Assembly (NCBI GenBank): GCA_965644295.1
Contig: CBFFRP010000014.1
Location: forward strand, 9,227 to 73,226
Origin: Paraphysomonas bandaiensis
Lineage: Eukaryota; Protista; Chrysophyceae
Length of the DNA: 64,000 bases
Direction of reading: 5' to 3'
Under the pieces are notes generated by a model. That model was given only the letters and a program-made list of their open reading frames with translations, ran no database searches and was not told the origin of the DNA. Positions 1,829-41,300 of the stretch are shown one piece after another; the stretch's first letter is position 1, and each line of letters begins with the position of its first letter. A program made the translations under genes and the position numbers.

Positions 1829-4800
1829 TTAATACAGCCCCAACTCCTTTTGCCTGGATCGTATACTTTCAACTGTTGCGAGGCTTTTAGTGTCTAGAGC
1901 TTCGTATTCGTACTCCTCATCCTGCGACCAGCGATGTGGCGCACTTACTGTGTCAAATGGCGATTTCTGATACCTCCTATCCCAATCCATATCGGAGAGT
2001 GGCCGCTTAGGTTTATTCTTAATAGAATCCAAAGCTTCCACACTTTTCTTTCCGTCCTTTGGCGAACGTTGAGTCACAACACGGTCAACTTCAGTATCAC
2101 AACAGCCATACACAGTTGATCGTACGGACAATTTCTCCGGAGGAGGTATTTTAACTTTTCGTGTCCGCTTCGTCGTTTTCGATTGACGAGTTCGATGGGT
2201 ATTGGTATTGTGCTCTGACGTATGTTCAATATTATTGGACGGGCCAGAAGCAGCCTTCATCATGGCTCGAGTGGACGATTCTGGAGCAGTTGAGCGCATA
2301 ATCTCATCTGTAGTTTGGTTATGGCTTGGATGAGATTGCACATTTTCTGTCGACTTGCTACGTTTGATTGGAGCTGTATCGTCATTCGGAGTATCTTGGT
2401 CGTCATTAAAACATAAAAGGAACAACTTATCCGGATCACGAGACTGTTTCGACGATTTATTGAATGGTGAGTTTGTTACTCCTTCCTCCATCCAGTTGCA
2501 ACTCGTATTGCTCTCAAGGCTTTCCGATCGCAAATTTCTTCGCTGTGACGTGCCGTTGTTCGTCGCATAATCTCCATGGACCGACCTCATGTTAATATCA
2601 GGTAATTCAGGACGACTTGTAGACTTATAGTAGGCAGGTTTGAAGTCGACATCTCCAACAGCTGACTTGGCTGCCACAAAATTTTTCGATGGGCAACTAC
2701 CAAACAACAGCTCGTCTATATTTTTGCTGAGTTGACCGCCGTCAATGTCGCCGTTCTCGGTGCCCTCATTATCAGGTTTCGCAACGGAAGCCGATTTGAT
2801 GGACTTAACGCCACGATATCCTCCAAATGCGGCATCAGATATGTCGGAGGTAGGGCTTTGGATGTGTGTATTGGATTCGGATATCGGTCTGCTGGAATTA
2901 GATGAGGGTGTCATAAACCGTTTATAACCCATAAATGCTTCTTTACTGAATCCCCATGGATCCATCAGTCGCCGTTGCTCTTTAGCACGAGACAACTGAC
3001 GTTTCAAATCCTCCTCTCTTGCTTTCAGCTCATCTATTTCGCTTTGCAGGGCATATTTTTCGTCATCGAATGACTTCATCTTATCGAGTGCTCTCTGTAA
3101 TTGTGCCTCACGAGAAGCTGCGTCTACTTCATACCCTTCAATGCTATGGGACAAGAACGATATTTCTGATGATTTCTTATCGCTTTCAGTCGTTAAGTCG
3201 GCAATTTCTGATTGCATACGTTCTGCTTTAAAGGTAAGATCCCCCACCTCAGCTTTCAGACGTTCCACTAAACTATTGGCAGTGCCAAGATTTTCCTGCA
3301 GAGTTGTCAGGTCTCCAGACTTCCGCGAGGCATCGGCTTTCAAATCGTCATATCGACGTTGCAAATCCATTAGTCTCGACTCTATCCCTTCTTTGTCCCC
3401 ACTGTTTTGTTTCAATGTATCTCTGAGCTCCTCGAGGTCATAGTTTAATCCTGCATTCGCTTCACTTAACGTTTGATTCTTCTCACTTTCAGTGTAAAGT
3501 TCCTCTTCAAGATGACTAATTTTATCTTCGCAATTCTGCAATTCCGATCTATGTTCCCGACATTTCTGTTCTAGACTTTCTATAGCTGCTTCTAATTCAT
3601 GTATTCTTGATTTACAGCCAACAAGCTCCTCCGACATACCCTTGTTCTCACTTTCTGCAATACCTAACTTGGCCTCCGCATCTTGAAGAAGTGACCTTTC
3701 CTTGGAAAGGTCCAATGAGACCGCACTAAACTGTTCTTGAAGGTTGGAAACGCTTGCTGATAGCTCTAACTTATCAGCCAAATCTGATTCTAATTTAGAA
3801 TTCTTCTCGTGAGAAGCCTTTAACTCAATCTCCACAGAACTTAAGGCAGCAGACACGCGCTCCGATTTTTCCTCCGCACTACTTAAATTCTCTTTCAAAA
3901 CCACAATTTTTTCCTCCAGCATAGCCTGATATTCTTTCAGAGACTTTTTTGATGTCTCTTCGTCAGCCAAGCGACCCTCTAGAGCTACTACATTATCACG
4001 AGATGAAGATAAATCGTTCTCTAATCCCTCCTTCTGAGAAGATAACAGAGTGATGCTTTCTTTGAGCTTCATCAGCTCGTCTTCACTACCCTCGGTATCA
4101 AGCGATAAACGGCTCTCTAAGGCTTGAAGTTTTGATTCCATTACAGAGACGTCATCTCGAAGTGCTTGAATTACAGACACGGCCAGAGTAACTTCTGCTC
4201 TGAGCTGGGTGTCAATATTGTCACTTGACACTTCATCCAACTTGTTGGAAGTTTTATGATCAGTACTTTCAGATACGAGTACTCCGTGAAGGCGTACAAT
4301 CTCCTCACGGAGTGACATTCTCAGATCGTCGTCTGCATGTGCACTTGCAGGGGAGATACCTGCGGTTGTGCTCCTCAATCTATCCACCTCTGCTTCCAGC
4401 CTTGACTTTTCATCCCTCATAGTTTCAAGATCACTTGTAGCTACGCTTAAAGCTTTGGCTTGCTCAGCTGCACGTGATTCAGCTTCACGATATTTTTCTT
4501 CATAACTACCAATTTGTTTCATAGCAGTTGCAGACACATCGAACATACCGTTTAGAGCATTCGAATCCAATGACTGTGATGCCTCGAGCTGTTCGTTGAG
4601 CTGAGAAATCTTTTCCAACAGGGCTGACTTCTCCGTATCTACAGCTGCATCAGCATCAGCACGGAGTCGAGCTAGCTCGCCAGCAAGTTTTTCTTTTTCC
4701 TCATTTGACGACGATAAGTTCTCTTTAGCGCTTTGGAGGGCAGCAACACTGTCTTTCAACTGAGTTTCCATGGCTACTAGCTTCTGCTGCAGAGAAAGTA

Positions 4801-7800
4801 CACCTTCACCTGGAGCACTTTTCTGGTCAGCAATGTCACTACTATGCACCCCATCCATATTTTTCGCACCACCTTCTTTAGTCGCGTCTTTTAGCGCATT
4901 CTTCAAAGCTTGTAATTCTAAGTCTTGATTGTGAATTTGCTCCTCCAAACAAGAAACCTTAGAGCGAAAGTCGGTGGCAATTGATTCTGATGTGTCAACT
5001 TTCTGCCGCAATGTCTCGATCAGCGTGTCATTCTCGGATTGACTTTTCTTGTGTTCCTCTCGAACCTCGGTCAGCTTATCTTCAGCTTGCTGCAACTCAA
5101 TGGCACCCTGACGAACTTTGGACTCTAAGTCCTCCATAATAGCCTCATAGCTGCCAACTCGTTTCATAGCAGAGGCTGAAATCTCCAGCAAATCGTGCAT
5201 ACTATCCCGTTCACTCAATGGGTCATTGGCAATACTAACCAGCTGTGACTTCGTTGTATGTCCTCGCAACTTAGCTAAATCATTTTTAAGTTCATTATTT
5301 TCTTGCTGGGACATCCTTAGTCTTCTCTCGGCTTCTTGAAGGGCGTCACTGGTCTTCTGCGCCCCATTTTCCTCCTCTTTCAAGTTTTCCTCGAGAAGAC
5401 CCTTCGAACTGGAACTAAGTTTTCTTTTCAAACGCGCAATCTCCTCCATGAGAATATATGGATCGCTTTCCTCGTCAATATTTCGGTCGATAGAATTTGG
5501 GGACACATTAGAACCAGATTGGGCTTCAGAAGTAGCTTTCTCAGTAGCTTTCAAAGTCGCTTCCAACTTCATTTTTTCTTCTTTGATGTCTCTGAGCTGT
5601 TGTTCAGCGTTCTCTAGAGCAGTTGTGAGTTCCGCTTCTCGAAGGCCTGAATTACACAGGGCTTGTTGAGAATCCGCTAGTGCTGACTCCCCATTCTCCA
5701 CAGCTTTCTCCAACTCATGAATTCTCGCTTCATAAGTATTTGTATCGACAGACACCACAGATGCTAGCTTTCTGCGCAGGCGTGCATTTTCCGCCATAAG
5801 TTCATATCTCTCCACATCATCGTGGTCATCACCAGAGGGCGTTGCCACTACAGTTCCAGGAGTTGAGACACTACTCGACGCCTTCAGGATATTCAGCTCA
5901 TTTCGTGCTTGTTCAAGTTCTTCGGTCAATCTGGCATATTCATCATCAGTTTTCTGTATCTTTTGTTCAGCTTCCTGTAAATTCTTCGCACTTCGAGATA
6001 ATTGTGTCTCCAACTCACTTATATTTCCCGAAAGCTTAGAATTTTCAGCACTTCGTGCGAGCTCCTCCTTAAGTCTCGCATTCTCTTGTTGAGATTTTTC
6101 CAATACTATTCGAACATCTTCTGCTGGCAGTTCTGATTGCGGAGACTCACCCTCCACAACACCCCCCTCGTCATTGAAGTCCTTTTGAGTAGAATTACCA
6201 GTATTTAGTATACCATTCACTCTTTGAAGCTCAGATTCTAGGTATATTTTTGCCTGCTGGGCAGTGTGAAGCTCGTTAGTCATGGTCGACAGAGCAGCCT
6301 CTCTCTCAGTTTCCAGGTTTTTGTATGCCTTATTTTCATCAATTGCTATATCATACTGCCCTTGTAGCTGCGTCATTGCGGCCTTCAGCTCTGCAATCTG
6401 AGACATAAGGTCTTTAACACTGTCTACTCCGTCAATAATATCACTGCTCGCTGAGATTTCAGTATCTGAACTGGACTTCTTCACTGTTTCTTGGAGGAAC
6501 TGAATCGTCTCTTCCTGCTCACTGCACTTCTTCTGCAGTGCTTCAATCTCTGCATCTTTCTCCTGAATGCTAATTTCCAAGTCCACAACCTCTTGCTCGA
6601 GGCTATCCAAAGAGTCTGCGTATATATCTTCCTGCCCATCGTAATCTGAGCCTAGTTCTTCATCACCACGCATAACACTATTCACATATTGACGACCCCG
6701 TTCAAATTTCACTATCCATGGGTGATACGCGTTGAATTCTAGCTTCTTTAATTCGTCGATAGCAATATTGATATGTTGCAATCCTGCAGTCATTGTGTGA
6801 TTCTCCATAATCATTATTAAACCTAGATTCCCCTCAGCGTTTATTGTGCGGGGGTGCGTAGGCCCCAAAGCTGCAGTGAACACATCACGAGCACGGAGTC
6901 CAAATGTTTTCGCGGCAGGTATATCGTCCATGGCCCGACACAACGTACACAAATTGTTCAAAGACTCCGCAACAAGAACATGATCTTGACCTAAGCATTC
7001 TATACGTGTCGTGTGAGCATCCTCAAGGTACTTTTTGGCCTCATCAAACTGTGCTTCGATTGTAAGCAGCAAGCCGATGCTGTTGCATATCGATGCGTAC
7101 GCTAAACTTTTCACACCCTCACATCGGCCGGATATATAGCAGCAGTCAATGAGTTCTGTACGAGATACGAGAAGCAACCGGCTGTCTCCTCTACGAAAAT
7201 CTATACAGAAGTCCCTGAGTCCTTGCTTGGATTGCACAACCACCGGGTGCTCGTCACCAAAAAATGAAATACGGTCTTTCAGATTCTTCTCATAAATGGA
7301 CAAGAGCATGGTCAGGTTATCACCACGCTCACGCATGTTTTCGGCTTGACAGTGAATAACTTCACACACCGCCGGGTGACGCTCACCATACATTTGCTTG
7401 CGCAGAGTTAGAGCCTGCTCGTACAAACCTGCAGCCTCAGTGTGTTGCCCAAGGGTACGTAACAGTTCTGCTTTTCCCAGAAAGAATGTCGACCTAGCGG
7501 GAAGGTCCGTATTAATGGATAAGCCATTACCCTCATCTTTTATTGCGGCAGATGTCGCGTCGTAACGCTGTTGAAACAAGGCCTCGAGTGTATCGTAGTA
7601 CCCTTTGCTGTCCAAATAAGATCCAGTCACCAAAAGGTATGATGCCAAACCAAGCATTGTTTTGAAGTACTCTGGGTGGTATTTTCCCAGTGCACGTTCT
7701 TGTATAGTCAGCGCCTCTCTGTACAATTTAGAAGCCTCTTTGTAGCTACCTAACACCGCGTGACTGTCTGCAGCACTGCAGGAACTCCGGGATGACATAA

Positions 7801-10041
7801 TGCTGAACTGACCAAACATGCGTTTGCTTGAGGACGAAGCTTTTCGAAAAAATTTATCCGCTTGTCGATACTGTCCTGCGGCATGTACAGCACATCCATT
7901 TATGTAGAGTCCATAAGAAATACTCGGGTGAAGTTCGGAAAATATTTTTTCATTAATTTCTAATGCTTGCTGTGCACATGCTCTTGCCGATTGGTGTTTC
8001 CCGTTCTCAATATCAATTTCGCATTTGAGCCCCAGGCTGGAAGCAATCTTCGGGTGACTGTCATTCAGAAAAATTCTCTTGTACATCATTAACGCTTTAT
8101 TATTTTCTGCCTCGGCTTCAACCAGTTGCCCAACGTCCTTAAGAATCTTCCCTCGAAGCAAATGTGAATCCGCCACAGGAAGTGATTGCTCTTCGAGGTA
8201 CTCAAGACGAAGTTTCAGTCCTCTGGCCTGCTTATCCAGAGCCTTGTCATAAGAACTCATTCGCCTATGCAACTCAGCAAAATCAGACAGTATCTGAGCC
8301 ATAAGAAGTGCGTTGAACTTTTCGTCAGCAAATTCGTCCGTAACATTAGCAGCTAGCGCAGCTTTCATAGTTTCGTTGGCCTGCAGATAGAAATTTGACA
8401 TAGAATATAACTGCTAAACACGACGCTTACTTTGGTGAAGAGGGCTTTAGCTTCAGTGTGCTTTTCGCTGTCCATGGCACAGACAGCGAGAGCATTAATC
8501 AAACGAGCTACAAGGGGGTGGTCGTTTCCGAGACATGTAGAGCGTATCTTCAAGAGCACTTCATATAGCTCAAGTGCCTCATTGGCGTCCCCTTTCAAGC
8601 GTAAATTTTCCGCCTGAGCAAATGTGATCTCACACATCAGGGGGTCGTTCTCGTCGTACAGGCTTAATGCATCATCCATACAGCTCTTAAACAGATCCTT
8701 TGCCTCTTTGTACTTGGCGTGGTTGGAAAGGTGTAGAGCATTGTGATACTTAGTTTGCCAATTTAAGCGGCACATCGACGCAGTAACCTGACTTTCCTTG
8801 GCAAACCCGTTCTGCTCCATGACTTTCTCAAATAAATCCAGTGCCTCGTCATACTCCCCGTTTTTCGACAGTTTCTCGGCTTCAAATAAAAGCAATTCAT
8901 TCCGAAACTTTACTATCCATGGGTGGTCGTCTTTAAAGTCTTTTTCCTCCAGTATGCGTACAGCACTGCTGATGAGATCTAGTCCTACTTGCGTACCTAC
9001 ACGAGCCTGAAGACTCAGTGTTATCCCCATGTTCCCACGAGCATTCACCACACTCGGATGGTCTGGGCCCAGTGCACTCTCGAAAGTTGCAATCGCCGAC
9101 TCATGGAACATAATGGCCTGTCCATAACTTCCTTTGTCGCGAAACAACTCGGCGAGGTTGTTAAGACTTCCTGCAACGACAGCACCTTTGCTACATAGTT
9201 TTTCTCGCCGGATAGTCAGTCCTTCCATCAGCAATTCTTCTGCAGTGTTGAATTTCCCCATGGAACGATGCACCAAACCCAAATTATTGAGAGACTCTGC
9301 TAAGAGTAGGGGATCCAGATCACCCGTGGAAACCAAATCCCGTCGAATTGCAACTGCAGAATCATGGGCGACTTCAGCGTTGACGAAATCCTTTTGCCCC
9401 CGCAACATCTCACCATAACTGTTCATATACTTGGACGGTCGAGGATCCTCTCGATTAAAATGATCCTTGGTGAACCGGATCATAAAGCGGAATATCAATT
9501 CCGCAATATCATATTCCCCTATGGTCGAATTATACAGAGAAATGTCATACAGCGCATCAAAAACATGATATTTTTCTGTGTCATCTGATTTGTTGGACTC
9601 TATCATACTTATCCAGGAGGTCAACTTTGCCGTTAATTCTTTTCTCTCAACCTTTTGGTATATTTGAACGAGAAATTTTAGAATATCACGAGCCCTTTCA
9701 GAATAACGTTTGACATTGCTGCACTCCTTCACTAAAGCCTCAACACACTTCTTCTCCGCAGCACCTGTATTTCCATTCTCCAACATAGCTTTTCCATAAA
9801 AATACAGGCAGTCGACTTCACAGGGGATGGTCTCTTCTGGGAGCAGAGCGATAACATCCAGCGCCTTCTGGAAGCTATCAATTGCATCTTCAGGCTCATT
9901 GTGCTTTAGCAACAATTCTCCCATACTGCAGTGCACCTGGGCTGAGGCTGGGGATGTGCGCTTATTGTGCGCTGTCAGGTGTCTCAACTCACTCGTAAGT
10001 CTCTCGATTTCGGCATCGAAATCAGACGTATTTCCTTCCAT
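1829..10041 (-). CDS. Giant TPR-repeat (kinesin light chain/NPHP3-like TPR_12) plus long coiled-coil protein, about 2720 aa
   Basis: ORFs 8365-10041 and 1829-8401 are joined in frame by a 50-nt GT-AG intron at 8381-8430. Repeated LG.DHP.VA.SLNNL motifs are followed by more than 1200 aa of heptad-rich sequence and a disordered tail. Confidence 0.9.
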
Positions 10042-13600: not shown

Positions 13601-14859
13601 TTCATGTGACAACATATATTCGCAGTAACATCTGTTTATCATAATATATGTTCACCAGTCACTCCTGTATCGTATATATTATAGTCAAACGTCAGTAATT
13701 AAATTTACTTCACCCGTTACACCCTTTAGTAAATTTTACCTATTTCACACTGTTAACTCACATCAACGGGATCTATTATCGAACCTAGTCACACCAAAAT
13801 TGGTGTAAAAAACTTGTCAAGCAGTGGTTGGAAAATCTAGTCGCCTAATAATTTTCAGTTTACAAATGACTAGGTTTTTCAACCAATTTGACTGGGTTAA
13901 ATAATATTACTCCACTTCAGTTGCACAATACGTTATGCCGCATCATACTGCAGAAGTCTTCGAAAATGACTTTTCGGCTTTAGTACCGTAAATGCGACGT
14001 ATGGGTTAGAACTATTATGGGGATGTCCAACTTTCCCGTGTGTTGATTACATGAGCGAACACACCACGTTTTGCTCTGAGTTCATAAGAACTTCCTCTGG
14101 AGTCTATATACTTGCAGGCGTTTTGTTATGATCGTATTGACTTCGGTAAAGGGATTAATCAATGAACCTACTCTAGTTACACCAAACACCTAGTCAAGGA
14201 GTTGATAATCTAGTCATTAAATAATGAATAATTCATATTTTTAGTTTACAATGACTACGTTGACTAGATGTTCACGGTACTCACCTAATAATCAATTAAT
14301 GAATGCAGACAATAAAGTATTTATTACTACAACAAATTCTTTACACCAGAACTAGTGTGACTATGTGATTGATTCTTGCAACCGTTTCTTGCTGTTATAC
14401 TATTAGTTTTTATTTTTATTATGACCAGCAATAAATAAATCTTCATTGTAGTGCAACTGAAATATATGGACTGCTTAAGATTGTGTCTATCATTGGTATT
14501 GATATTGATTGATAGTTGAGATGATAATATAATTGTACCCAACATCAATTGAATGATGAGACATATATGTTGATTATAATTTACTACTTGATTACTGTGT
14601 GAGTTCAAGTTCAGTTACTTAAGTTCTTTCATCATTCAAAAATGTCAAACGTTGACATCATGATTACCAACTGTTGGCATATATGATGTCACAAAAACTG
14701 AAACACTGACGTACTAATCTGTTGTTGTAAATTTATTGATTATTATGTAGCAGATTCACAAGAAACACAGTTCTTCCACCACAGCTTCAACAACAAATAC
14801 TCGTACATTCAGTACATTTCGTTCCAAAATTGCAGCTCCCGATCCATTTCTAGCACACT

Positions 14860-17800
14860 CTACAGTGCTCGCAGGTAGTGTGGACAAGAGGAAGCCGTAA
14901 GCAAGAGAGCCTCCAACACATCAAACCACTTGTTCCGATCGCCAGTGGTGGAGAATTCAATCGTGATTTCATCATCGGAATGGCCGTCAACGGTGCTCAC
15001 ATACAGGCTACGCTCCTCGCTGGCAGCTGCTTTTTTGCCTGGCATCACTCATCAGTCATTGACGCTACTATGCAGTTCCCAAAACAAAGGAGATAGTCAT
15101 CTATTACCTCCAACAAGTGTCTTCTTGTAGTGACCGGGACCATATCCTTTAGAAACGGATTTCAGATTGCGTAATGGAACTTTTCGTCCCGGCTTGCTGA
15201 CTTTATTAGATGTGTCCTTCAGGATAATGTACTCACAATCTGTTGTCAAAAACATGTGCTTGGAACTCGGCGTGCCCTTTACGAAATCGGTGAGCATCTG
15301 TCCTGCACGCAATAAAGTACGATGTTGGGAAGTGAGGGGGTCAGGCATCGAGGTGTCATATTTGGAAGTCTTGACCTAAGTTAGCGTCACAAACACATAC
15401 ACTCAATACTTGAGTACATTAGGAAGCGCACCTCTTCCTTCTTCATGGCAGCCTCCACATCAACCACATCATTAAGACGAGCAAACAAAGTCCCTTTGTT
15501 GGTCTTTGTTCCCTCTCTCCCCTTGGCTCGTGCGCGAGCACTCATGCTTAACAAGGCGGAGTTAATTGCCTCATGTATCTCATTGTGGCTCTCAGGATAC
15601 ATCTTCTGAACTTTCTCAATGGCAGCTTTGCCACCTGCTCACTTGTATTAATACAATTGAGGTCAACCAACAACACATCACACCTTTCTCGATAACTATA
15701 TTCGCGTATTCTACATCTGCAGACACCACGTTATCCAGCGTCTTTATGGCGGATATCATCAACTCCTCATCATCTCCGAATACTTGCATGGTATCCAATA
15801 TGATTCGTACTCCGCCATACTGGACAATGTTCTTCAGATTGCTTTTAATAAACGCCAGCTGTCCCAGTAAAGAAAATATTCTCGCAACAACTGCAGTGTT
15901 CTCAATGAATGTAGTCACCAACTCCATAAGTTTATGGCAGCCGCGTTCAGCAATAGTCTGAAAATACCGACATTACTTAATTTTGGTATACTCAGAATAG
16001 TAACCTGTGAGAGCGCGTCTGATGTGCTCAGGACAGACATAATTGAAATACAAAGCGTGACTATTGCTTCGTTCTCAGAATACATAGCCAAAACTGTAAA
16101 GACCGTGTTGACACCCCCATTATTGTCCAAAAGCTCTCTGTTCTCCTTGACGGAAAAGGCATTCAACAGAATCTATTAACAGAAGATGGAACTCACTTAG
16201 GTTACTATATACTCTCCACAACTCACCTGCAAGACACTTGCGACCTGCTCTTCGTTGGAAATATTCGCTTCCATAATTTGGAGGAGAAGTACCAGCCTAT
16301 CTCCACTCTCGCCGCACACTTCCACCTGGCCCACCCCGAAGCTTGTGATCACAATCAACATCTGGAATACTGAGGCAGTCAGAGAGACGTCGTCGTCAAA
16401 ACGCGAGAGGGCACTGAATGAACAATCAATAATTCCTGTGCGCACGATATATGGCGCAGATTCTGCATCCACTGCATTATATATAGCATCAACGCCGGTG
16501 CTGATGATTTCCGGTTTGTCGTCGTGCTGCTTGACTACTGAGACCATGAAGTCAACAGCTCCTTCATGAATAAGTATCTCGATGGGAGTCATGTATTCTT
16601 CACTCTCATTTTCTTCCGGCTATTAACTATGAATTACAACGTATATAATAGAAATCAGTCTAAATTTACCTCTAGACTCGCAAGGTTCGAGAACAGTTCT
16701 AACCCAAGCTTCAATATAAGTGGAGTCTTCACATGTGTCATAAGTACAGAAACCACACATTTTGCGACACCTTTATGAATCATCACATTCACGCAATTAT
16801 CGTCCAGTGAAAACGCCCCTAAAAGGCGTAACACTCTGTTGAGGAAGAGTGTTTCCATGGAGAACGTCTGCAAAATACCGAGAAGGCTCACAACGCACAT
16901 CGAGCATATGGTGTGGTTTAAAAACGCGTCCTCGTGTACGATTACGCTCCCCACAAGGTTGAGAATGGTGTAAAACAGAATGACGGGATTGGACTTTGTT
17001 GACGCTACGATTTGATCGGATTGTGAACTATGCTTTCGGACCTTTGCCGCTGTTGCCTTTGTGAGTTTCTCAAGCTCTTCAGATGTCACATTACTCAGAT
17101 GCTTGTCTGTAGCAAGAACGACAATGTCATGCAAGCCATATTGAAGGCATACAGTGGCTGTTGCTGGGGACGACTTTGCAAGAGTAGACAGCGTGCTGAA
17201 TCCCTTGATCAGAACCGATATATGATGGGCGTGTGCACGGCATGTTTCACATAAAACACGGATGTATTCCTCTCCTGTTTAAGTTGTATGTATAATATGA
17301 ACAGCATATGATAGATAGCCTTTATGCCATACCTGTAAGGAAAGCTTGAAACCGTTCAATGGAACACAGTGCCTCAGTCATCTCAAGGGCCCTCTCCAGA
17401 GTACTAATATCCACAGATGACGAAGAAAACTGAAACTAGGGATACATGGTAAAACAACTGGCAACTAAGCACATTTTTCTGTACCTGTAGAGATGATATT
17501 AATGATTGACAATACTCTGAACTGAGGCTCTGCAATATAGTCTGCGAACTCTTCACCGACTACAACCATAAAAACATGAATTGTCAAAATATCTAAAAAA
17601 CTGAAAGAGAGGGGCAGCATTGAAACACAACACACTACACCAAACACAAGTCATAACGTTTCGCACCAGTGCGTATATAAATTTCATAAGCTGACTGATG
17701 ATTAAATTATCAGAAGCATGACTGTGAAGAAGACCATATATAACATCAATGACTTCCTGACTGACTGAAACATCCGTCAAATTATTCTCAAGTCTAAATA

Positions 17801-20800
17801 AAATTCATTAAAAAAAATCAAAATAAGCTATCTCGAAGAACTACCTGTCAACAAGGACAACAATATCCTCCAATTCCACCCGGAGGGCTTTGTATTCCAT
17901 AGGCTCCTCCCACTGAGTGTTGCCATCGGCAGCGTTGTAATAGTAGGGTTGGCTATCTTCGGTAAAAACCTATATAACACAACTGTTACAAAACCATTTA
18001 CAATACTTCACTGTCCACCTGCATCCAAAGACCGTTCGCAGCGACAATAGGTATAAGAGCTGCTAAGTGCCCCTCTAGTTGAGACTCCGGTCCAATGGCA
18101 AACGCGTTGGTAAGGTCATCGCTTATAGACTGGGCCACGTTTTGGAGATATTCATTGCTTGCATACCGCAGCATCAGATCCTTCATCAAACGAATAGTGT
18201 CCTTTGGCAAGCGTAGCTCAGCAATACCAATAGAGTCCGCAAAAACTCGAAGCAGATAGACAGCATTCTGAGCAAATCCCTCGTCTTCTTGCCCCGGCCC
18301 TTTCAGAGCTGAAAGTATCTGTTTGACTACCCCATACTCCACTAAGGTCTGCATTGTTCCCTCCAGCTCGTGTGAGGCGACCTTTGTGATTATGGTAGAT
18401 GCAAACACAGATGTACTGCTGTCACAAAGCGCATCTTGTGTGAACTGGAGCAGTTCAATCGAAGATACAATGGCAAATGACCCCTCTGGAGTGTTGGCTA
18501 AACAGTCCAGCAGCTCAAGAGGACAATGCGGTAGTAGCTTCGTAGTCGCGGCAACTATGGCATTAATATGTGAGGAGCCGTTGAAAGAAGTGACCTCGCC
18601 TGCATTGATAGCCTGACAGAGCATTTCACATATGGTGCTGCTAATAGTAGCTGTGATGTGTGCAGATCGCGGGGTGCTCCGAGTAGGCGTGTAGAGCTCG
18701 GCCAACACACTAAGTAAATAAGGATATCCGAAGGAAGCTTCTAAAATTAGCAACTCCAGTGTGTTCTTCCAGTACATTGGACCAGGAGTCTGTGCATTCT
18801 GACTGCAGAGAATATCACACAATTCACCGACACCATTATTCTCAAGCGATGATAGAAGAGAAAGGTTCTGGAGTAACTTCTGGATAAGCGAGTCCACAGT
18901 GGAGTTTTGCTCAGCCGTAAAGACGGCAGCAGTCACTGTACTCGTGGATTTGCCAATACTTCCACGTCTACTGTTAGTGGAAGAAAGCAACGCCGCACCA
19001 GGCGTCAGCTGTTGCAGCACATTCAGTAGCCCCATTTGTAGAGAATACGGGCCACCGTTAGAAGTGTTTTCGACAAGACCGCGAACAATTCTTAGAATCG
19101 CTACCTTGGTGTCGGGCTGAATCTGATAGGCATCACAGTCACGTAACATCGCCATTGCGAACTCAAGGGTGCGGTGTATGGCGTCCTCGGAGGGAACGAA
19201 CCATTCTAAAGAGAGTAACTTACCCACACAAGTTACACAGGTATGTAGTGCCTCATCTCGCTCTGATTGTACTCCCTCCACAGGAAGCATCAACGCCGCA
19301 CAGGCGCTGAGGAGTGTGTTCAAGAGGTTCTCTGCAACCTCTAAAGTCAATGCATTTTCAAATAGCATCAAGTTTCCAATGAGCTGTACGTATTGTGACA
19401 ATTGCGGAATGACGTCGGGCGAATAGCCAGCGACCAATGCAACCACCTGAATTCGCGAAAAATTTACAAAGTCATGCTGCAGAATAAGCTCCACTTAATT
19501 ACCTGTTCAATGAAAGATGACAAGCTTGAGAGCGCACCCTCCATGCCCAATGCACCAACTGCGGAGGCAAGTTTTTTCTGCAGGGGCATGTCAGTTGGAT
19601 GATAGTTCATCGTGCGAAGAAGATAATCCTGCGTCCCCAATCCCTGGAGATAGTTGCACGTAGACTCATTCTTCCCGGCGAGAATACACATCATGTCAGC
19701 AAGTGCGTGAGTTGGACGAGAGAACTTCAAATACGTATCATCATGAGAAGGCATAAGATGGTCAATCTTCGATATCTCTCCTCCATCAATTAGGAGACTG
19801 CAATAGTCATCCGAGTGATTCCCTTGTAAAAGCGAGACTACAACATCGATTGTACTTGCCAGCAGGTCAGGGTAGAGTCCTTGCTTTGAACCACTGAAAC
19901 TTCTAGAAAGCCCACAAAGTGCCTCGATCACTTCTGACAGTGCGCGAAGGATGGCATGATTGACTCCATCTCCAGATACCATCTTCGATAGAGATAATAG
20001 AACCGCTACTGCAGACCGAATGGATGCCACGTTGTCACCTCCAATCTCAGCACTCATCAGGGACTCTGAGATGTGATCGCACACCAAGCTGGTAGCATTG
20101 CTTTCCACGATGGCATGCAGGCCGGTTGGGTCCAAAGCCAGTGCGGCCAGACAATTAAATGCAGCTGCCAGTACATCAGTCGGGTAGTTTCCTGAGTGAC
20201 AAACTTCTAAGGCGGCAGCAGTCGCCCCCCCACGAGCGAGAGCCTCCAGCACAGAAGGATGAAGAAGTGAAAGTGTGCGGATAGTATTGAACACTGAGGC
20301 AGTGGGATTATTTTGAGCAGCCTGTACCAGAAGAGGGACTGTAGCAATCGTTGCATTGATATCTGCATTACCAAGCGCCGCCCTTCCGAGTGCTTCTATA
20401 CAGAAATTAACAAACTCGTCTCTGGCTCTCGATATAAGAACACTCTCACAAACATTGCTGTTAGTTGAAGGCGAGAACCCCACCAAGCAGTTTTGAATTA
20501 TGGTCACTCCTCCAATTTCTTCAACTTGCTTCACGATATCTTCTCCACAAAGCATCAGCAGACCCAATCGCTGTATATCCAGAGACGCCTTTTCAACAAT
20601 TTCTACAGACGAATCCTTTAAAGAAAAGAATTTAGAGTCACCCACTTTCTTCATCAACTTATTTAAAGTATCTGTAACATCGGACTTCTGTAGAACTATC
20701 TTGATTGTACTTAGACAGAGCTGTTGAACATCTTCTGAAGAACGGAAGCACTCTAACGCATCAAAAAGACACGCAACACACCCCTGCCGTCGAAGTATTT

Positions 20801-23386
20801 CACATCCCTCTGGTATGGTCGCTAGGCGGTGTAGCACAGATACCAAAGACATCACGCATTCCGCCGTGGGGATATCATCAACAAGGTTTTCTTTGACACA
20901 ATGGATAACCATCTTGCTCGCGTTATGGTGGCATATAGCCAATGCGATGTCGTCATCTGCCATACTCAAGTTGAGGAATATGCTAACTACCGCCTCCAAG
21001 ATGCTGCGCTCCGTGGCATTAACCCGCACTATCGCACTGACTGCTGACAGCACATCGCAATCGACGGAGATTTGTTTATTCTCCTGCAGAGCCGTGATTG
21101 CAGATAACAGGCGCAATGCACTGATGACAACAGGGGTTACTTTCGAGTGACGTTGCAGCGCCAAAACACAGGCTTCGATGGTCGAACGCACGTTTATATG
21201 TGCTAGTACATCACCATACGCAATCATTTCCTCCAGTGCAGCACACAGTGTGCGCAACGCCTCGGCATGGTTCTTATCGCTTACAGACACATTCGCCATT
21301 GTACTCAGGAGAATAATAATTGGTGCTATACCTCCAGACGTGGCAATTCGGCCCAAGTTATCGGGAACCATGGAAAGAGCACCTATAGTCATAGCGATAT
21401 TAGGAATTTTTTGCATTATCTCTGGAGTGAAATCGCTAGTAGGAATCGCGGCGTACTCTGACAACTGAGCTACCACCAAGGAAATGAGTTCATCATTACT
21501 CAATTGGATAATTAGTTCCGCCGCTACTTTGCGAATATCCTCCTGCCTAATGTTATTACTAATTGCAGACATAATAATATCCAGTCCCATTCCATCATGG
21601 GCGGAGAGTACGCGACTCATGGCGCCATTGCTAAGAAGCAGAGTAGAGAGCAAGTACAGCGACTCCTTCAAAACGGGCAGATTGTCACTGAAACTGCGAA
21701 TGATGCCAATCACATACTCCACGAGGTCCCTTCCGATAAATGCCTGTTACAAATACTTATTTACTTCAACTACTTCTACTCCTTTCAATAGACATTACCT
21801 GAAGCATATCATCATTTGTGGCTAGATCAGAGAATATCTTCAGTGCTGCCAGGTGAAGTTTTTCATGATGTGGATGAGCATTAATTGCGCCTAACATTGA
21901 GTCTATATCTGTGGCCTGCATGTACTGTTCCAGCACCCCTCCGTGTCCACACAGAGACTCTAGGAAATTCATAGCACTCCAACATAGCGGAAGGTTATCA
22001 GGGTCCGTAGAGAGTACACTGAGGGTAGGCTGGATAGCGTTGGCTGTGCACACTAACAGCACGTTGTCAGGGACAGTTGTGATACGAGTTAGGGCTTGCA
22101 GAGCGTTGGACTTTATTTCCAGGGACGATTTATGAGTGGAGGGATCTATCGTGGACACCTGGGTTGGTTGAGTAATGGCCCCAACAAGGGCAGTGATTGC
22201 ACCATCGTTGACAAGCTCGCGAATGCTCTGGGTATTACTCGACGCAATCCGGAGAAGAGTACGGGTGGAAGTCTCGAGCTGGCGTGCAGACATCTTGGCC
22301 TCGCAACTTTGCACAAGAACCTTTACACCACCACTACGCACAATGTCTACACATAGCAATATCGCGGACAGTTAGTGATGTGATTCACCAACTATGCAAA
22401 ATGAAGTACCTGTGGATGACGATGAATCCATAGAAAGGGATGACAGCAGTCCTAGCATGTGCTCTTGCATCTCCATCGACAGTGAGCTCTGATTCTTTAA
22501 ACTTGTGATTACATTATCAATAGAATCGCTCCCGCATAGAGTGGAAAGTAACTTAGAGCAGATTTTGCAGAGCTGGGCATCTTGGCAATGTTCAATGATA
22601 GCCAAGCACAACTCCATTCCTCCTGCTGTTTTAATCACATCAATGTAACTCTTATCCTTGGAGCACAGACGGGAGAAAAGCATGCAGCCCGCTTGAAGTG
22701 CCGCCAACTCGGGAGCTTCCGCGTGAAGGGGATTCTGCACAAGACTTTTCATCGTCTCTATCGTAGGCCCGATACCACCGCCCTGGACGAAATCATCAAC
22801 ACCTTTCTGAACTTTGGTCAATTTCGTCAGTGCTTTCAAACAGCCGATTTTCACATCCGTTTTCTGGCTGCTTCCAACATTTAATAGGCTAATCAGCGAT
22901 GCGACAGCGTTACGCGACACAAGGGTTTGAAGGGCCTTGCTGTGATTGCAGAGAGTGTCGAGAATGGACAAGGCCACAGTCAAGACATCATCAGAAATGT
23001 CTGGGTTTGCTTCCAGTGACGCCAATATAGCTTCAACACATCCTTCTTCAGCAATTACCTCCGCATTTGCAGTGTCAGCAGCAAGCTTATGCAAGCAATC
23101 GCAGCACACAAGTAGCACATCCTCCTTGCCTGGGTGACGCTTGAGCACATCGACGACTACCTTACCAGCACCACAAGAATGAGCGACCACTAAGTTCTTC
23201 TTATAGTCTCTGTTGATGGGGTCGATAACCTGCATGGATCACCATTAGCGAATAAGAGCATCTCAAGTTATGGATGAGGCGGGGATTCACCTTACTCAGA
23301 CACTCGATCGAGTAGCACGCAAGCTGTCGGAATTTCTGGTGCTCTTTCACCGCTGCGATCAACGCGGGCACCTCGTTCTTTGACAT
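14860..23386 (-). CDS. GAC: Glideosome-associated connector (GAC)-like giant armadillo-repeat protein with internal WW and C-terminal PH domain; multi-exon, about 2500-2600 aa
   Basis: Introns checked in frame: 23230-23290, 22347-22409, 21744-21798, 19447-19502, 17970-18018 and 17794-17844, with more downstream. N-terminus is MSKNEVPALIAAVKEHQKFRQLACYSIECLSKVIDP; a late ARM repeat reads AIKTLDNVVSADVEYANIV; the PH domain reads LLRAGQMLT...HMFLTTDC...DRNKWFDVL. These match Toxoplasma GAC as recalled from memory, as do size and architecture. Confidence 0.8.
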
Positions 23387-28747: not shown

Positions 28748-29101
28748 ATAGAACAGATTGCAGTCAATCGTTATCTGCCGGGTCTCATTTATTATTTATT
28801 TCGAATCTTGGTAATTTTTGGATGAATTTAACACATACGCTCCGATGCATCGAAATTTAGGTTTAGACTCACTAACCGATTTTCTTTTTTCTTCTTAGTA
28901 TGCAACTGTATGAACTGATATTTTAAATTCTCCACAAACTTTTCAAAATTTTGTTTTTTTGATTTATTAATATTACTTGAATCTATTGCGTATAATTAAT
29001 CATATTCTATCACGAAGTAGTAGCAAGCATATCACATTCAATCATCAGTACATCTATATTAGTAACTAGTGAGTAGAGTATAGAGTATAATCTGCAAATG
29101 A

Positions 29102-30132
29102 TCAATAGTTACAGGCTTCGCACTGTTCTTTCCAAGTAACGGTAATATCCACTCGATTGAATAAATTGCACGCAGTTTCGGCAGTACAGCATGACCACAA
29201 AGCTTCATGTAGTTGAGCTGCAAGTGGTTTATATGCGTACATAATTCCCCACTTCTTTCTAATGTGCGCTTTGGCAAGATGAAATACGGGTTCAATTGGT
29301 GAAAAATCATAAGAATAAGGGGGAGAAACACAACCATCACGCCGAATTCTGCACACATATTATAAATATCTATCTTCACGTGCGTCGAAGCATTATCCAT
29401 GAGCAGCACACTGCGATCCCCAGGAAAAGGGTTCATGTGGGGAAAGATGTCATGTTCTAGGGCATCTAGAAATGTATTATGATCAACATTTTCTTCGTGT
29501 ACAGTAACAGCAAAAACTCCTTCGATAGACATTGCAGCAATGGCACAACAACTAACTTGGGGATTGAAGTGGCCTATAACATCACCACTCACGAAGGCAG
29601 GGTAGCCATGTGGTGAACGCCCATATCGGCGTAGAACTTCTGCCGGCTGGAGATGTGATTCGTCCACAACAGCATAGCAGCGAGCTGGAATTTCATCCAA
29701 TGATCGGGCCAAATTATTCTTATAGTAACGCCTCAAGCCCTCATTTCTGTTGTGGGAAATTCTTTGACAAACTTTTACGGTATAGCCCTCAGTGTTCATG
29801 GCATGCTTCATTTGGTGCTCCAAGTACGCCACGCCGTACACATTAAAAACCTTTTCGCATAATTCTTCGTTGGAATAAGTTGAATTTTCTGCCAGCAACT
29901 CTTTAACAAAATTGATATGCTCGAGTGAAATGACAGTGTGGTGCGAATGGTGTGAAGACTCTGGTTTAACTGATCCAGTGTCCAGATATTTGTCCAACCA
30001 CCTTCTAACTGTGCTTTGGGACACATCGTATTTCTCGTATATATGATCTAGTGATGCGGCCACAGAATTTGTGATTTCCAGAGAGTGATCAAACACATCC
30101 AAAATTAAAAGACGGAAAGCCTCGGAATACAT
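29102..30132 (-). CDS. DD34E transposase (IS630/Tc1-like), about 343 aa, with a one-base frameshift in a homopolymer
   Basis: N-terminal HTH (VSQSTVRRWL), VVDESH and LLMDNASTH are present. Restoring one base in the G5 run at 29319-29323 gives FLPPYSYDFSPIE, with 34 residues between the second D and the E. Confidence 0.92.
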
Positions 30133-37710: not shown

Positions 37711-38382
37711 GCCGTTAGTGTTTTCGAACTCGTACAGATTTATCTAATATGTATGTCTCTATTCATTCCATTCACAAAAGTTCCACACCATTCCACACAA
37801 TGCATGAGTGCGTGCATATGCATGTGCTGCTGATGCAGAGCAGAGTATCATAAGTGAGCGCTGCGGGTATTGTGCGTACTTTGATCATACAGCACGACAA
37901 TGTAACTGATAGCAGCTGCTGCTGGTACTGTCCTGAAAGTATCCCACAAAGGGGATTTTCAGGAGGTCCCATATATGGGATATTATAAACTTCGTGTTTT
38001 TTTGGCGAACAAACATACATAAAATTATTGTGTTGACGAATCCATACATACCAGTGCCAGCGTATCGGCAGTCAGCATCTTATTTTTCGGGAATATAATG
38101 AAGCAAAATTATTCTATATAACTTCAGTATAACTACAGCTAAAATACAGATAATTGTTGTCTCCGTATTACAGGCTTATTAGAACAAAAATATACAAAGG
38201 ATGCCGATACGAGAATACCATACATAAGAACCAGTAGCAATACTGCCCCTGGTACAAGTCTAGTATCGGTACTTGTGATTCCTGGTTGAGACCACTGATG
38301 TGCTGAAAGCGTTCACCACTAGCAAGTTCCTGTAATCTGCAAGTGTATATAATTGACTCTCGTGTCTGTGTTGTTATTCACT

Positions 38383-41300
38383 ATGAGCAGCTCACTGGAC
38401 ACACTCGATATACAGTCATACATCACAGAGGGGACAAAACCCAGTGATAGTACAATAGAAAAGGCATATAATGGAGTGCTCGAGGCGCAGTTAGTCCCTC
38501 CCAATGTCAGAGAGAATCTGGCCAGTAAAATGACACTGGATAAAAAGTGGGACACTGTTCTGGCTTATCACTCGATGATAGGTAATGCTCAGATCACCCA
38601 GCAGGCAGCATTTGGCGACAGCGATAGAGCTTTGATTAAAGCCTTGAAAACTTCCCGAAAACGACCAGATATCACTCAAATTCTTCAACTGAAGTCCCGC
38701 ATTTGTACTAGTAATAAAACCTGGATGGAGGCTTTTGTCGATGCCAACGGAATCGACATAATGATCCACGCCATGGAAGCACGGTTATCTAAGGTTCCCA
38801 TGGGCGAGTTGGATGCTGCTATTTTATTCGAGTTAATATGCAGTGTGAAAGCGATCATTAACAACGGCATGACTATGCAAAAGTTTTTAAACACGAATAA
38901 TGCTCTCCGAACACTGACTTTCTCTTTGTTGTTTGAATGGAAACCGTTAGTTCTTCAAGTACTGGAAGTATTGTCCGTGATATGCGATTACTCTAATGAT
39001 GCAGCTGCATTGATAGTGAAGTACCTCCGACACTTAGGCCGACTCCGTCGCGAGCCTCCGTTTCAACTCCTTGCCCAAGCTATAATTGATGCTGATGTGG
39101 ACGTAAAAGCAGCCGTTATGCTGCTCATTAACAACTTATTAGCAGGCACAGACAAACTCTCTGATCGTATGGTATTGAGAAATGACCTTAAGGCTTTAAG
39201 ATTCGGCAAGATATGTGAGGTAGCAGTGGATGATCTCGAGGATGAACTAGAAAGCATAGTAAATCGTGCATCTATTAGCGGTGCTGTCGACACCCCCCCA
39301 TTGGCTCATAGATCCATTCCTAGGGGTACCAGTAATGAAGAAGGGTATGATATGCGAGCAAGTGAAAGTTCAAAAACTTTTCGCAAGGAACGGATGCGGC
39401 ACAAACACCCATCAGAAACGAATTTTAAGTTCCTCTTTGAAGAGGAAATTGAACAGGTCGCTGATGATGGGGAGACCCCTATCAACCCCAATCAAGGCAT
39501 TATGGCGGGGCAGCTTAGTGCGGGAAAAAATAGGTTTAATGTCACCAAATCTTTAATGAAAGATTTTGGATCGAAAACCACTAAGACAAGGTTTTTCTAT
39601 TTGAATGGCGAGACTTTGCAGTGGTGGGCACCTGGTGAAGACTGGGCGAAAACCCCCCCTCATGGAGTGGTTGAGGCCATGGAAATACAAGAGGTGCGTC
39701 CATACAGCACTAATGAAGATCTCTATTCTATATCTCCACATACGTTTGACATTGTCACGTCAAGTCGTGTGCATTCCTTTTCTAGTCCCACAGAAGAGGC
39801 TAAGGAGTCTTGGATAATCGCACTCAATACAGTGAGAGACAAAGCCATGCTGCGTAAGTGCTCATATACTCTTCTCTCCTCCGACTTGGACTCGCATGAG
39901 TTTGAAATCAGTGCGAATATGTTTCGCAAACAGATCGCTGTGTTTGAAGCTATTGGCCTTGAAGACTATAAGAGGTCAATTACGAAGAGCGGGGTAGATG
40001 TCACTGACGTTACTGCATTAGTTCAATTCCTTCATGCTGAGCTCTCTGCCTCAGGGCTGAATGACAAGCTGATGGAACTTATGCAAGAACTCATTTTTGT
40101 TCCCTCTGATTCTGAATTCGGTGAAATATTTTGGACGAAGCTCGTGTCGATATGCCATGAGCTCAGAGCACTGGAAAAAGACAAGAAGTCTTCAGGACAA
40201 GGTCCTTCCCTCAAGAGCTACACCTTGGATACCGAGACTGTGAAAAAGATGCTGGGAAAAAAGGAGAAAACATCCTCTGGAAAAGTAGCTGTAGAAGTAA
40301 GCAAATTGACACTGGAGTTGTACACCAGAAATGCTGAAATTGAACGCCTTCAAAAGGAAGTGGAATCAATGCGCAAACATGCAGGTAGTTTCTTATATTA
40401 AACTCATCATGTAGTCTGTTTAATGGATATTCTGTTTTTTCAGTTGATGTTCCTGTGATGAGACAAAAGGCAAATACGATGAAGTTACCTGGAAGTGCAG
40501 GATTTTCTGACGAAATTGTAACCAAACCTATTCGTGCAAGAACCTCCGAGTTCACAATGGCACAAGTTTACCCCCCTTCCTCGCTGACTGGGGGAAATGA
40601 CTCTGTGCAACATGTCATGGGTTCTTCGCCCCCAAGCACTGTCTCTACATCCACGCAGTCGACGCAAACGGACATCATCAGTGAGCCAACTGTAGCCCCT
40701 CTTCACTCTCCCAAAGATACGTTGGAGCCTCAGGGAACTAAGCCGCCTCCACCCCACGCATCTGTTCCCTCTCCCTCTACAGACACCCCCGAAGATTGTG
40801 GAAACGCTATTAGTAGTGTAAAGGATAGAGCGAAGGATTCACCTCTGGCGGCAATGTTTGCAGCAAAGGCCCCTCCAGCAAGTGCTGAAAGTATTAAATC
40901 ACGTGCAGCCGCATCACCGCTTGCTGCAATGTTACAGAGTAAGCTCCCGGCGGTCCCGGAAGAAGGCAAGACGGCAAATGGAGTAAAAAAATTGTCTGTA
41001 GCTGGGGCATCTCCTCTTGCTGCCATGTTACAAGCCCGTACACCACCCGGTATGACCCCTGCAGCTGACTCTTCTAAACCAACTACTTCTACCACCGGCA
41101 CAGCTGTTGCTGTTCCCCAGTCCAGTCGACCTGTACCTGCCGCTCCTGCCCTTCCCTCCGATGCAGGAACAATTCTAGGAGCCAAAGCGTCTGGCCAAAC
41201 CGGGGGAGCGCCTCCAGTACCGAATATGGCAGCAATTATAGGAGGAAAAAAGAAATCTAATGTTCCCGAGTCGAAACATAAGCCAACTCGTAAAATGAAG

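Follow-up and report, generated by a model that had tools for sequence, protein, structure and literature searches.

A single-copy giant armadillo-repeat gene of a stramenopile with probable remote, profile-level homology to the apicomplexan glideosome-associated connector

The window, i.e., the whole 64,000-nt stretch of Paraphysomonas bandaiensis DNA that was analysed, carries on its minus strand one expressed gene that fits positions 14860 to 23386 exactly, where the sequence-only reading had placed it. We call this gene GAC-like, after the glideosome-associated connector (GAC) of Apicomplexa. An in-frame stop stands before the start ATG at 23386, and the stop codon occupies 14862-14860.

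14860-23386, minus strand: complete coding sequence of the GAC-like gene, 16 exons, 2,550 codons and a stop
23386-23291, 23229-22410, 22346-21799 and 21743-19503, minus strand: exons 1-4
19446-18019, 17969-17845, 17793-17667 and 17559-17485, minus strand: exons 5-8
17435-17333, 17274-16670, 16619-16227 and 16172-16005, minus strand: exons 9-12
15957-15684, 15634-15432, 15375-15108 and 15038-14860, minus strand: exons 13-16
14720-14859, minus strand: 3′ UTR, poly(A) addition at about 14720

All 15 introns are of the GT-AG type and measure 47 to 107 nt each. Spliced transcript contigs, which come from one poly(A) marine metatranscriptome and three culture runs, show the 12 downstream introns directly. 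The remaining three, further upstream at 23230-23290, 22347-22409 and 21744-21798, were deduced from the reading frame, the GT-AG consensus, alignments with homologues and the length of a 7,770-nt transcript contig. Contigs spanning 14720-14880 cover the 3′ UTR, and the poly(A) tail appears in one transcript contig as a run of T ahead of 14720 on the plus strand. With one copy in the 62.6-Mb assembly, the gene is real, expressed and single-copy. As a separate observation, the poly(A) marine metatranscriptome contigs indicate that this giant scaffold is expressed in the sea.

The encoded protein had been described as an armadillo (ARM) repeat protein of about 2.5 kaa ending in a PH domain, a description borne out for the 2,550-aa open reading frame by Pfam (ARM repeats), AlphaFold models and a PH profile. 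Its parts follow the order ARM solenoid, WW domain, second ARM arch, linker and C-terminal PH domain. The ARM repeats are backed by Pfam and by two confident AlphaFold models, and extrapolation from these two segment models, rather than a count, gives an estimate of about 50 repeats. The closest known system is GAC (TgGAC TGME49_312630, structures 8BT6/8C4A, and PfGAC), a giant single-chain ARM/HEAT-like solenoid of 2,639 aa with 53 repeats in TgGAC. In GAC, region I spans residues 1-1665 and region II 1670-2489, with a linker between them and the PH domain at 2511-2639 (PMC10125020); hence both proteins run in the same order from an N-terminal solenoid through a junction, a canonical ARM arch and a linker to the PH domain at the C-terminus.

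23291-23374, minus strand: family-wide N-terminal motif, aa 5-32, H-Q-x-F-R-Q-L-A-x-Y-S-x-x-C-L
18019-23386, minus strand: ARM/HEAT-like solenoid of the N-terminal part (aa 1-1711), corresponding to region I of GAC
19503-21743, minus strand: exon 4, aa 489-1235, modelled alone
17901-18030, minus strand: WW domain, aa 1708-1734, interrupted by the intron 17970-18018
15453-17774, minus strand: C-terminal ARM arch, about aa 1760-2395 with approximate boundaries, counterpart of GAC region II
14863-15342, minus strand: PH domain, about aa 2414-2550, interrupted by the intron 15039-15107

The N-terminal motif is kept in the relatives P0014, P0017, P0028 and P0044-P0049. Exon 4, the largest exon of the gene, lies within the N-terminal solenoid and gave an AlphaFold model with helical repeats throughout (pLDDT 86.7). 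The WW domain was detected by Pfam on exon 6 alone as a partial match (E 8e-6, 26.2 bits) and was also detected in the relatives P0045 and P0006. Its W...YYxNxxTGxxxWxxP pattern is kept in most relatives, and a model of the equivalent segment of P0006 (pLDDT 89.5) predicts beta strands at its start, where the WW domain sits. In this model, the C-terminal arch is built of some 13 canonical ARM repeats that lead into a long helix, with a flexible linker before the PH domain.

The PH domain holds 20 Lys/Arg and is modelled, again on P0006, with seven strands and a C-terminal helix. The window's own two PH exons yield nothing by Pfam, and Pfam PH matches in long-form relatives are weak or sub-threshold; the sole significant one belongs to the short-form relative P0051 (PH_12, E 1.2e-8). 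A family PH profile matches, over about 115 residues, phospholipase C-gamma2 (E 4.5e-9) and PLC-delta1 (1mai, E 7.4e-8), and more weakly TgAPH (6f8e, E 0.048), while the PH domain of GAC gives no match to this profile at E<=10. Profile comparison thus assigns the domain to the phospholipase-C-delta type. It resembles the N-terminal PH domains of PLC delta1/gamma (1MAI, 8JQG) in fold and in this alignment, but here it is C-terminal, sits on an ARM solenoid and is found without the PLC catalytic domains. An alignment read by eye does not clearly show, in the window protein, the residues with which PLC-delta1 binds PI(4,5)P2, and because this Lys/Arg inositol-phosphate pocket is not clearly conserved, lipid specificity cannot be read off. 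It is worth noting that PLC-delta1 (1MAI) and TgAPH (6F8E) are also the closest structural relatives reported for the TgGAC PH domain (bioRxiv 10.1101/2022.12.09.519741), making PLC-delta1 the nearest well-known relative of both PH domains. The PLC-like match is therefore compatible with a shared origin, without showing one.

The family to which the protein belongs is rare, as an exhaustive phmmer search of 1.84 billion representative proteins returned only about 40 matches. Full-length relatives measure 2,361-2,549 aa and align collinearly. In BLASTP, the long-form relatives share collinear N- and C-terminal blocks with the window protein and their motifs align. The window protein matches the family profile over aa 48-2547 with 1,073 bits; aa 48-1893 align to it at 705 bits, and aa 1973-2547 to profile positions 1820-2366 at 374 bits. 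The long ARM-WW-ARM-PH form, which aligns collinearly from end to end (N-terminal motif, place of the WW domain and terminal PH domain included), includes P0014, P0047, P0017 and P0044-P0050, among others. Besides the source genome, its only named host is the stramenopile Cantina marsupialis (P0014 and P0047). A full-length orthologue on the environmental contig L005 covers residues 1-2550 with 43-78% identity per exon, a likeness that the sequences place far beyond chance level. A shorter ARM + PH form of about 1,820-1,900 aa (P0027, P0040 from Paulinella chromatophora, and P0051-P0053) carries the same C-terminal arch and PH module (profile 1620-2364, 145-319 bits), but its N-terminal part is shorter, non-collinear and devoid of the N-terminal motif; by these comparisons it falls outside the subfamily of the window gene.

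The ligands of GAC are F-actin, phosphatidic acid and the tails of adhesins; the protein localizes to the apical complex and is required for gliding (PMC10125020). A profile built from ten full-length relatives was searched against the PDB, where TgGAC ranks first (8bt6_A, E 6.9e-45; 8c4a is also TgGAC), a result that comes from a single 10-sequence profile of a repeat protein and carries a high bias, of 31 bits in the main domain. This main domain aligns profile positions 3-954 collinearly with GAC residues 56-1035 (96 bits). Further collinear stretches pair 927-1132 with GAC 916-1122, and 1958-2026 with 2148-2216, the latter being the only stretch in the C-terminal arch (69 residues of region II, 15 bits). 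GAC is thus the best PDB entry in the forward direction, with the match limited to the N-terminal ~45% of the protein. F-actin binding by GAC maps to residues 1-1114 (PMC10125020), and the N-terminal solenoid of the window protein takes in the stretch that the family profile aligns collinearly with this region, so that the profile-level likeness of about 1,100 residues falls on the part that binds F-actin in TgGAC. The profile evidence indicates that the homology to GAC is remote, with a shared architecture; the sequence relationship would cover the N-terminal ~1,100 residues, the remainder sharing the order of parts only.

No single-sequence search with the window exons or with the full-length relatives reached GAC at E<=1e-3, and a phmmer search of the N-terminal piece yielded no GAC match at E<=10. 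The sequence-only reading had given the GAC N-terminus as beginning MSKNKVP and closely matching that of the window protein. The string it quoted from the window protein, MSKNEVP...EHQKFRQLACYSIECL, is indeed present at aa 1-30, but the TgGAC N-terminus reads otherwise (...VIQHQTFKRMLLFGLRSLADF...), and the proposed match is not confirmed. A second quoted motif, KTLDNVVSADVEYA, is present at aa 2315-2328 (window 15744-15703); the sole GAC match of the KTLDNVVSAD piece, at residues 464-513, is of the generic ARM kind and out of collinear order, and lends the comparison no support. A different N-terminal correspondence emerged by eye, as H-Q-T-F-K-R in TgGAC stands at the same 31-residue ungapped distance from the first HMMER-aligned helix as the H-Q-x-F motif of the family. 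HMMER gives no score for this motif, because it lies outside the profile. GAC forms a closed ring in which AHR1 and AHR17-18 contact AHR48-50 at the interface between the N- and C-termini (PMC10125020), and our guess is that the conserved His of H-Q-x-F could be the equivalent of H24, a TgGAC residue at this interface.

The failure of single-sequence searches, together with the lack of a GAC match to the family PH profile, is what would be expected from a generic giant ARM scaffold without special kinship to GAC, whose resemblance reflects repeat composition or convergence and whose function could be, e.g., ciliary or in trafficking. A decoy control seems at first to agree, since five generic giant ARM proteins reach total scores on the family profile above that of GAC. 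However, these totals come only from 14-21 short repeated matches to profile positions of about 210-430. None of the five shows a long collinear alignment; they repeat one short canonical-ARM stretch, whereas GAC aligns over about 950 collinear residues and two further stretches. Canonical ARM proteins (beta-catenin, importin-alpha, Vac8, ODAD2/ARMC4 and designed ones) are 4-10 times shorter, match one short stretch of the family profile and have no WW or PH domain. The identical spacing of the H-Q-x-F motif from the first aligned helix and the match to GAC in order and sizes of parts also argue against a generic scaffold.

Foldseek aligned the exon-4 model to 8bt6 with a TM score by query of 0.57 and to 8c4a with 0.54; no other PDB chain listed exceeded 0.35, other long solenoids and canonical ARM proteins included, and the ESM Atlas gave at most 0.41. 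GAC is hence the best global structural fit in the PDB for exon 4. The model of the C-terminal arch matched only generic ARM proteins, with 8bt6 at rank 7 (rmsd 24). Weighing these results, we regard a generic ARM scaffold as unlikely, though it is the most serious of the competing explanations.

The remote similarity to GAC, with nothing else found, could in principle mean that the contig is an apicomplexan or chromerid contaminant of the culture and the gene simply a GAC. The genome had been taken as non-apicomplexan, and the marker-gene check agrees: the assembly's own HSP90 belongs to the ochrophyte stramenopile type, with best named matches to chrysophytes and brown algae at 84-87% identity, and is 100% identical to an MMETSP transcript. 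A contaminant is also at odds with the absence of any TgGAC match to the window exons at E<=1e-3, with a closest named relative in the stramenopile Cantina marsupialis and with the presence of the gene in several culture runs, under two organism labels, and in marine metatranscriptomes. Moreover, published work treats GAC as restricted to Apicomplexa and reports that not even chromerids have it (PMC9250747; bioRxiv 10.1101/2022.12.09.519741). Contamination is therefore extremely improbable. Light-harvesting genes were looked for in the genome and none was found; the host is a free-living, apparently non-photosynthetic stramenopile.

The sequence-only reading had proposed a full-length homologue of GAC. 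What survives of it is the profile homology of the N-terminal ~1,100 residues, the size and the order of parts; no end-to-end match to GAC was found, and strict orthology is thus not supported. A true orthologue would do the same job as GAC, linking F-actin to secreted adhesins and phosphatidic acid during gliding or an invasion-like feeding. Consistent with this are the similar size and domain order, the collinear N-terminal homology that includes the actin-binding region, the single copy of the gene and the fact that the N-terminus and the PH domain are the parts most conserved between the window and L005 (64-78% identity). However, apicomplexan GACs are reported to be highly conserved among themselves (53% between the PH domains of Toxoplasma and Plasmodium; PMC10125020), yet the window exons miss TgGAC by single-sequence search, and neither the arch nor the PLC-like PH domain carries a GAC-specific sequence signal. 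In addition, a WW domain, absent from GAC, interrupts the passage from region I to region II, where GAC has the six-residue linker L1. The two also differ in the arch, which has about 13 ARM repeats here compared with 16 in GAC, with no evidence of the AHR50 insertion, and in the host, here a free-living stramenopile. Strict orthology with a conserved role appears improbable, and more so than a generic scaffold.

We favour, with a probability of roughly 0.6, the view that the protein is a member of a rare GAC-like family and a remote homologue of GAC that probably couples cortical F-actin to the membrane. In such a scaffold, the N-terminal solenoid would bind actin filaments, the basic PH domain would dock the C-terminus on an acidic-lipid membrane, and the WW domain together with the C-terminal arch could grip membrane or cortical partners by their proline-rich tails. 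Cortical F-actin would thereby be tied to the plasma membrane, which could serve, e.g., to catch prey, to adhere or to move over surfaces.

A bolder and tentative extension, which we hold to be possible but rather less likely than not to be correct, is that GAC descends from an older actin-membrane linker of the SAR lineage, which would persist near full-length in a few free-living heterotrophic stramenopiles and couple through the WW and PLC-type PH domains. This ancestral linker would have tied F-actin to membrane receptors via these two domains, serving prey capture or surface motility. In the papers covered that name GAC, from 2022 onward, the titles and opening lines of abstracts mention no relative outside Apicomplexa. 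A collinear remote homologue of its actin-binding half in a free-living stramenopile would mean that a core part of the glideosome arose outside parasites. It would also supply an outgroup to distinguish what is ancestral (the solenoid and the PH anchor) from parasite innovations (phosphatidic acid sensing, adhesin binding and conoid targeting) and, if the ancestral linker is real, a tractable non-parasitic model for GAC function and glideosome assembly. The finding also draws attention to an uncharacterised and very rare giant cytoskeletal scaffold of marine heterotrophic flagellates.

The interval 14860-23386, which the sequence-only reading had proposed as an apparent full-length homologue of the apicomplexan glideosome-associated connector (GAC), contains exactly one protein-coding gene in the six-frame listing, read on the minus strand as a chain of long ORF pieces from 23386 to 14860 and including the sequence strings quoted in that reading. 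The gene has 16 exons and 2,550 codons, with an ATG at 23386 preceded by an in-frame stop, a stop codon at 14862-14860 and a 3′ UTR of 140 nts. Transcript contigs from three culture runs and one poly(A) marine metatranscriptome were aligned to 14700-20699 and directly revealed 12 splice joints in this region, all CT..AC on the plus strand, that is, GT..AG for the gene, as well as a T run before 14720 that represents the poly(A) tail of the transcript. Three upstream introns are predicted at 23230-23290, 22347-22409 and 21744-21798; they restore the frame and match the local exon-AG/GTA consensus, in agreement with homologue alignments and a 7,770-nt transcript contig. All 15 introns are GT-AG and very short (47-69 nts, plus one of 107 nts), and two of them interrupt small domains, the WW and the PH. 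Searched with a profile built from the last 800 residues, the 62.6-Mb assembly showed a single locus at full coverage, and the gene also occurs in marine metatranscriptomes. The gene is expressed, conserved and single-copy, and its product is a GAC-sized ARM-WW-ARM-PH protein.

The cytosolic HSP90 of the assembly is 100% identical to an MMETSP transcript, and its best named relatives belong to Paraphysomonas imperforata (87%), Ectocarpus (86%) and Ochromonas/Chlorochromonas danica (84-85%). No light-harvesting (Chloroa_b-bind) gene, not even a first-look candidate, was found in 62.6 Mb, where incomplete assembly could hide some, so the host stramenopile is probably not photosynthetic. Together with the presence of the gene in marine metatranscriptomes, these observations place the host, whose lineage was checked through HSP90 only, among marine stramenopiles, with heterotrophy probable, and outside the apicomplexans and chromerids. 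The earlier view that the genome is unlikely to be apicomplexan is shared here since HSP90 is closest to ochrophytes, namely chrysophytes and brown algae at 84-87%. Apicomplexan contamination as the source of the gene was rejected on this ground among others, which include a stramenopile as the closest named relative.

Other genes in the window
1829-10041, minus strand: two abutting long ORFs of 2,190 and 558 aa with TPR_12/TPR_10 (NPHP3-like) repeats throughout, ending in a coiled coil; the two probably form a single giant TPR protein
29059-30132, minus strand: DDE_3 (Tc1/IS630-type) transposase with HTH domains
38353-42143, plus strand: formin (Drf_GBD, FH3, PH and FH2 domains) spread over two long ORFs that are probably spliced together across a short intron
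49437-53529, minus strand: TPR and WD40-propeller protein, combined, unusually, with an additional LysM domain in the downstream ORF

The GAC-like gene and the formin are 15 kb apart. Formin-1 of Toxoplasma makes the filaments bound by GAC; the adjacency of the two genes here is probably due to chance.

The description of the product as an armadillo-like protein of about 2.5 kaa ending in a PH domain was borne out by its 2,550 codons, by ARM-type repeats, which are the only Pfam matches of the large exons and recur in the structural models, and by the modelled C-terminus of a relative. The AlphaFold model of exon 4 (21743-19503, minus strand; aa 489-1235), for which 22 aligned relatives were used, is an unbroken helical-repeat solenoid (pLDDT 86.7). 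The C-terminal model was built on the homologous C-terminal 794 residues of the relative P0006, which shares 28% identity with the window protein over this stretch, with the window exons included as rows in the alignment. This model (pLDDT 89.5) contains a small beta-sheet WW domain, then about 13 canonical three-helix ARM repeats, followed by a helix of 37 residues and a disordered linker; it ends in a PH domain made of seven strands and a C-terminal helix. In the window protein itself, the WW domain (aa 1708-1734) is split by an intron, its second half alone reaching E 8e-6 in Pfam, and the Lys/Arg-rich PH domain (aa 2414-2550) is divided over the last two exons.

An exhaustive phmmer search of exon 4 against 1.84 billion cluster representatives returned 40 matches in all, including a few close fragments of 45-63% identity. 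About ten relatives are full-length (2,361-2,549 aa, about 23% identity), collinear with the window protein at both ends, and have in common an N-terminal motif (..HK.FRQLA.YS..CL..), the position of the WW and the PH domain. The only named host of this long form besides the window genome is the stramenopile Cantina marsupialis, with two paralogues, the remaining members coming from metagenomes or assemblies. A related uncultured organism carries a full-length orthologue on an environmental contig (L005 8294-17758; ENA ERZ23486764), which aligns over residues 1-2550 with the same multi-exon layout and 43-78% identity per exon, peaking at the N-terminus and the PH domain; gene callers had fragmented it into numerous small "genes". 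A sister family of shorter proteins (about 1,820-1,900 aa; P0027, P0040 and P0051-P0053), one member of which is from Paulinella chromatophora (Rhizaria), shares the C-terminal ARM arch and PH module and has a different, shorter N-terminal part. Exon 4 met generic ARM clusters only in a protein-atlas feature search, and when the family profile was used in a word-indexed search, further family members appeared but no named GAC, with generic ARM proteins saturating the candidates listed.

The claim of a full-length GAC homologue stands in part: homology is found at the profile level over the actin-binding half, but every single-sequence search fails. No exon and no full-length relative matched Toxoplasma GAC (TgGAC; 8bt6_A or 8c4a_A) at E<=1e-3; exons 2, 4 and 5 had no PDB match at 1e-3 by phmmer, the N-terminal piece had no GAC match at E<=10, and the full-length relatives P0014 and P0024 matched designed ARM proteins and importins only. 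Two resemblances proposed in the sequence-only reading did not hold: the TgGAC N-terminus printed by HMMER (..VIQHQTFKRMLLFGLRSLADF..) differs from the string given there, and the exon bearing the KTLDNVVSAD motif drew only generic ARM matches by phmmer, GAC among them but only at 464-513, away from the corresponding position. A profile of ten full-length relatives (A1) ranked TgGAC first among 177,635 PDB sequences (E 6.9e-45), with a main domain of 96 bits aligning profile 3-954 to GAC 56-1035, a second collinear stretch (927-1132 to 916-1122) and a weak third (1958-2026 to 2148-2216). Because ARM repeats inflate profile scores, a decoy control was run, in which five generic giant ARM proteins totalled even more bits than GAC; each gave 14-21 short matches, all at profile positions of about 210-430, and none of the five a long collinear domain. 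By eye and unscored, the family H-Q/K-x-F and the TgGAC H-Q-T-F both lie exactly 31 residues, ungapped, before the first HMMER-aligned helix. The chief weakness is that a single profile, built for a repeat protein, carries the link between the family and GAC.

Comparison with the GAC structure was likewise divided, the exon-4 model fitting GAC best while the C-terminal arch model fits generic ARM proteins only. The exon-4 model gave a TM by query of 0.57 on 8bt6 (rmsd 8.8 over 768 columns) and 0.54 on 8c4a, against at most 0.35 on the other PDB chains among the matches listed, long solenoids included, and at most 0.41 in the ESM Atlas. By VIA-align, more residues aligned at a meaningful rmsd with GAC than with any other structure, but its Z did not exceed that of beta-catenin and its register was shifted. 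Structural matches of the model that covers the C-terminal arch and the PH domain are dominated by its ARM repeats. The family PH-domain profile (A4) matched the N-terminal PH of PLC-gamma2 (E 4.5e-9), PLC-delta1 (1MAI, 7.4e-8) and, weakly, TgAPH (6F8E, 0.048), and gave no match to the GAC PH at E<=10. PLC-delta1 (1MAI) and TgAPH (6F8E) are also the structures reported to resemble the TgGAC PH most closely (Hung et al., bioRxiv 10.1101/2022.12.09.519741), an indirect hint that the two PH domains may be of the same subtype. Another PH of this PLC-like type lies in the same genome (G000:C579:8727-9053, plus strand) within a 951-aa ORF, with E 1.2e-6 to the family C-terminal profile, and may belong to the organism's phospholipase C.

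Parts of TgGAC (PMC10125020) and of the window protein
N-terminal solenoid: TgGAC region I, 1-1665, 37 repeats; window protein 1-1711
Junction: TgGAC six-residue linker; window protein WW domain, 1708-1734
C-terminal arch: TgGAC region II, 1670-2489, 16 ARM repeats; window protein about 1760-2395, about 13 ARM repeats
Linker: ordered in TgGAC; long helix and linker in the window protein
PH domain: TgGAC 2511-2639; window protein 2414-2550

The order and sizes of the parts agree, the clear difference being the WW insertion in the window protein. F-actin binding by TgGAC has been mapped to residues 1-1114, the smallest interface being 559-1114 (PMC10125020), and this is the part with detectable homology in the window family. 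GAC was described as apicomplexan-specific and lacking in chromerids (Boisard et al., PMC9250747), and as unique to apicomplexan parasites (Hung et al.). The suggestion that homologues outside Apicomplexa may already have been reported found no counterpart among the listed papers from 2022 onward that name GAC, judged mostly from titles and abstract openings, and no literature pairing the GAC name with stramenopiles was found. The window family is best read as a remote GAC-like family outside Alveolata and not as a GAC orthologue.

GAC binds filaments, not monomers, and its N/C interface is intramolecular. By homology to the actin-binding half of GAC at the profile level, the N-terminal solenoid of the window protein would bind F-actin, while the basic PH domain would anchor the other end to acidic-lipid membranes; the residues lining the PLC-delta1 pocket are not clearly conserved, so the sequence gives no indication of lipid specificity. 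The WW domain, together with the arch, could recognise membrane or cortical proteins by their proline-rich tails. We propose that, with these three activities, the protein would couple the plasma membrane to cortical actin; since the host probably feeds by phagocytosis, the cell behaviour that it would serve may most obviously be prey capture or adhesion to surfaces.
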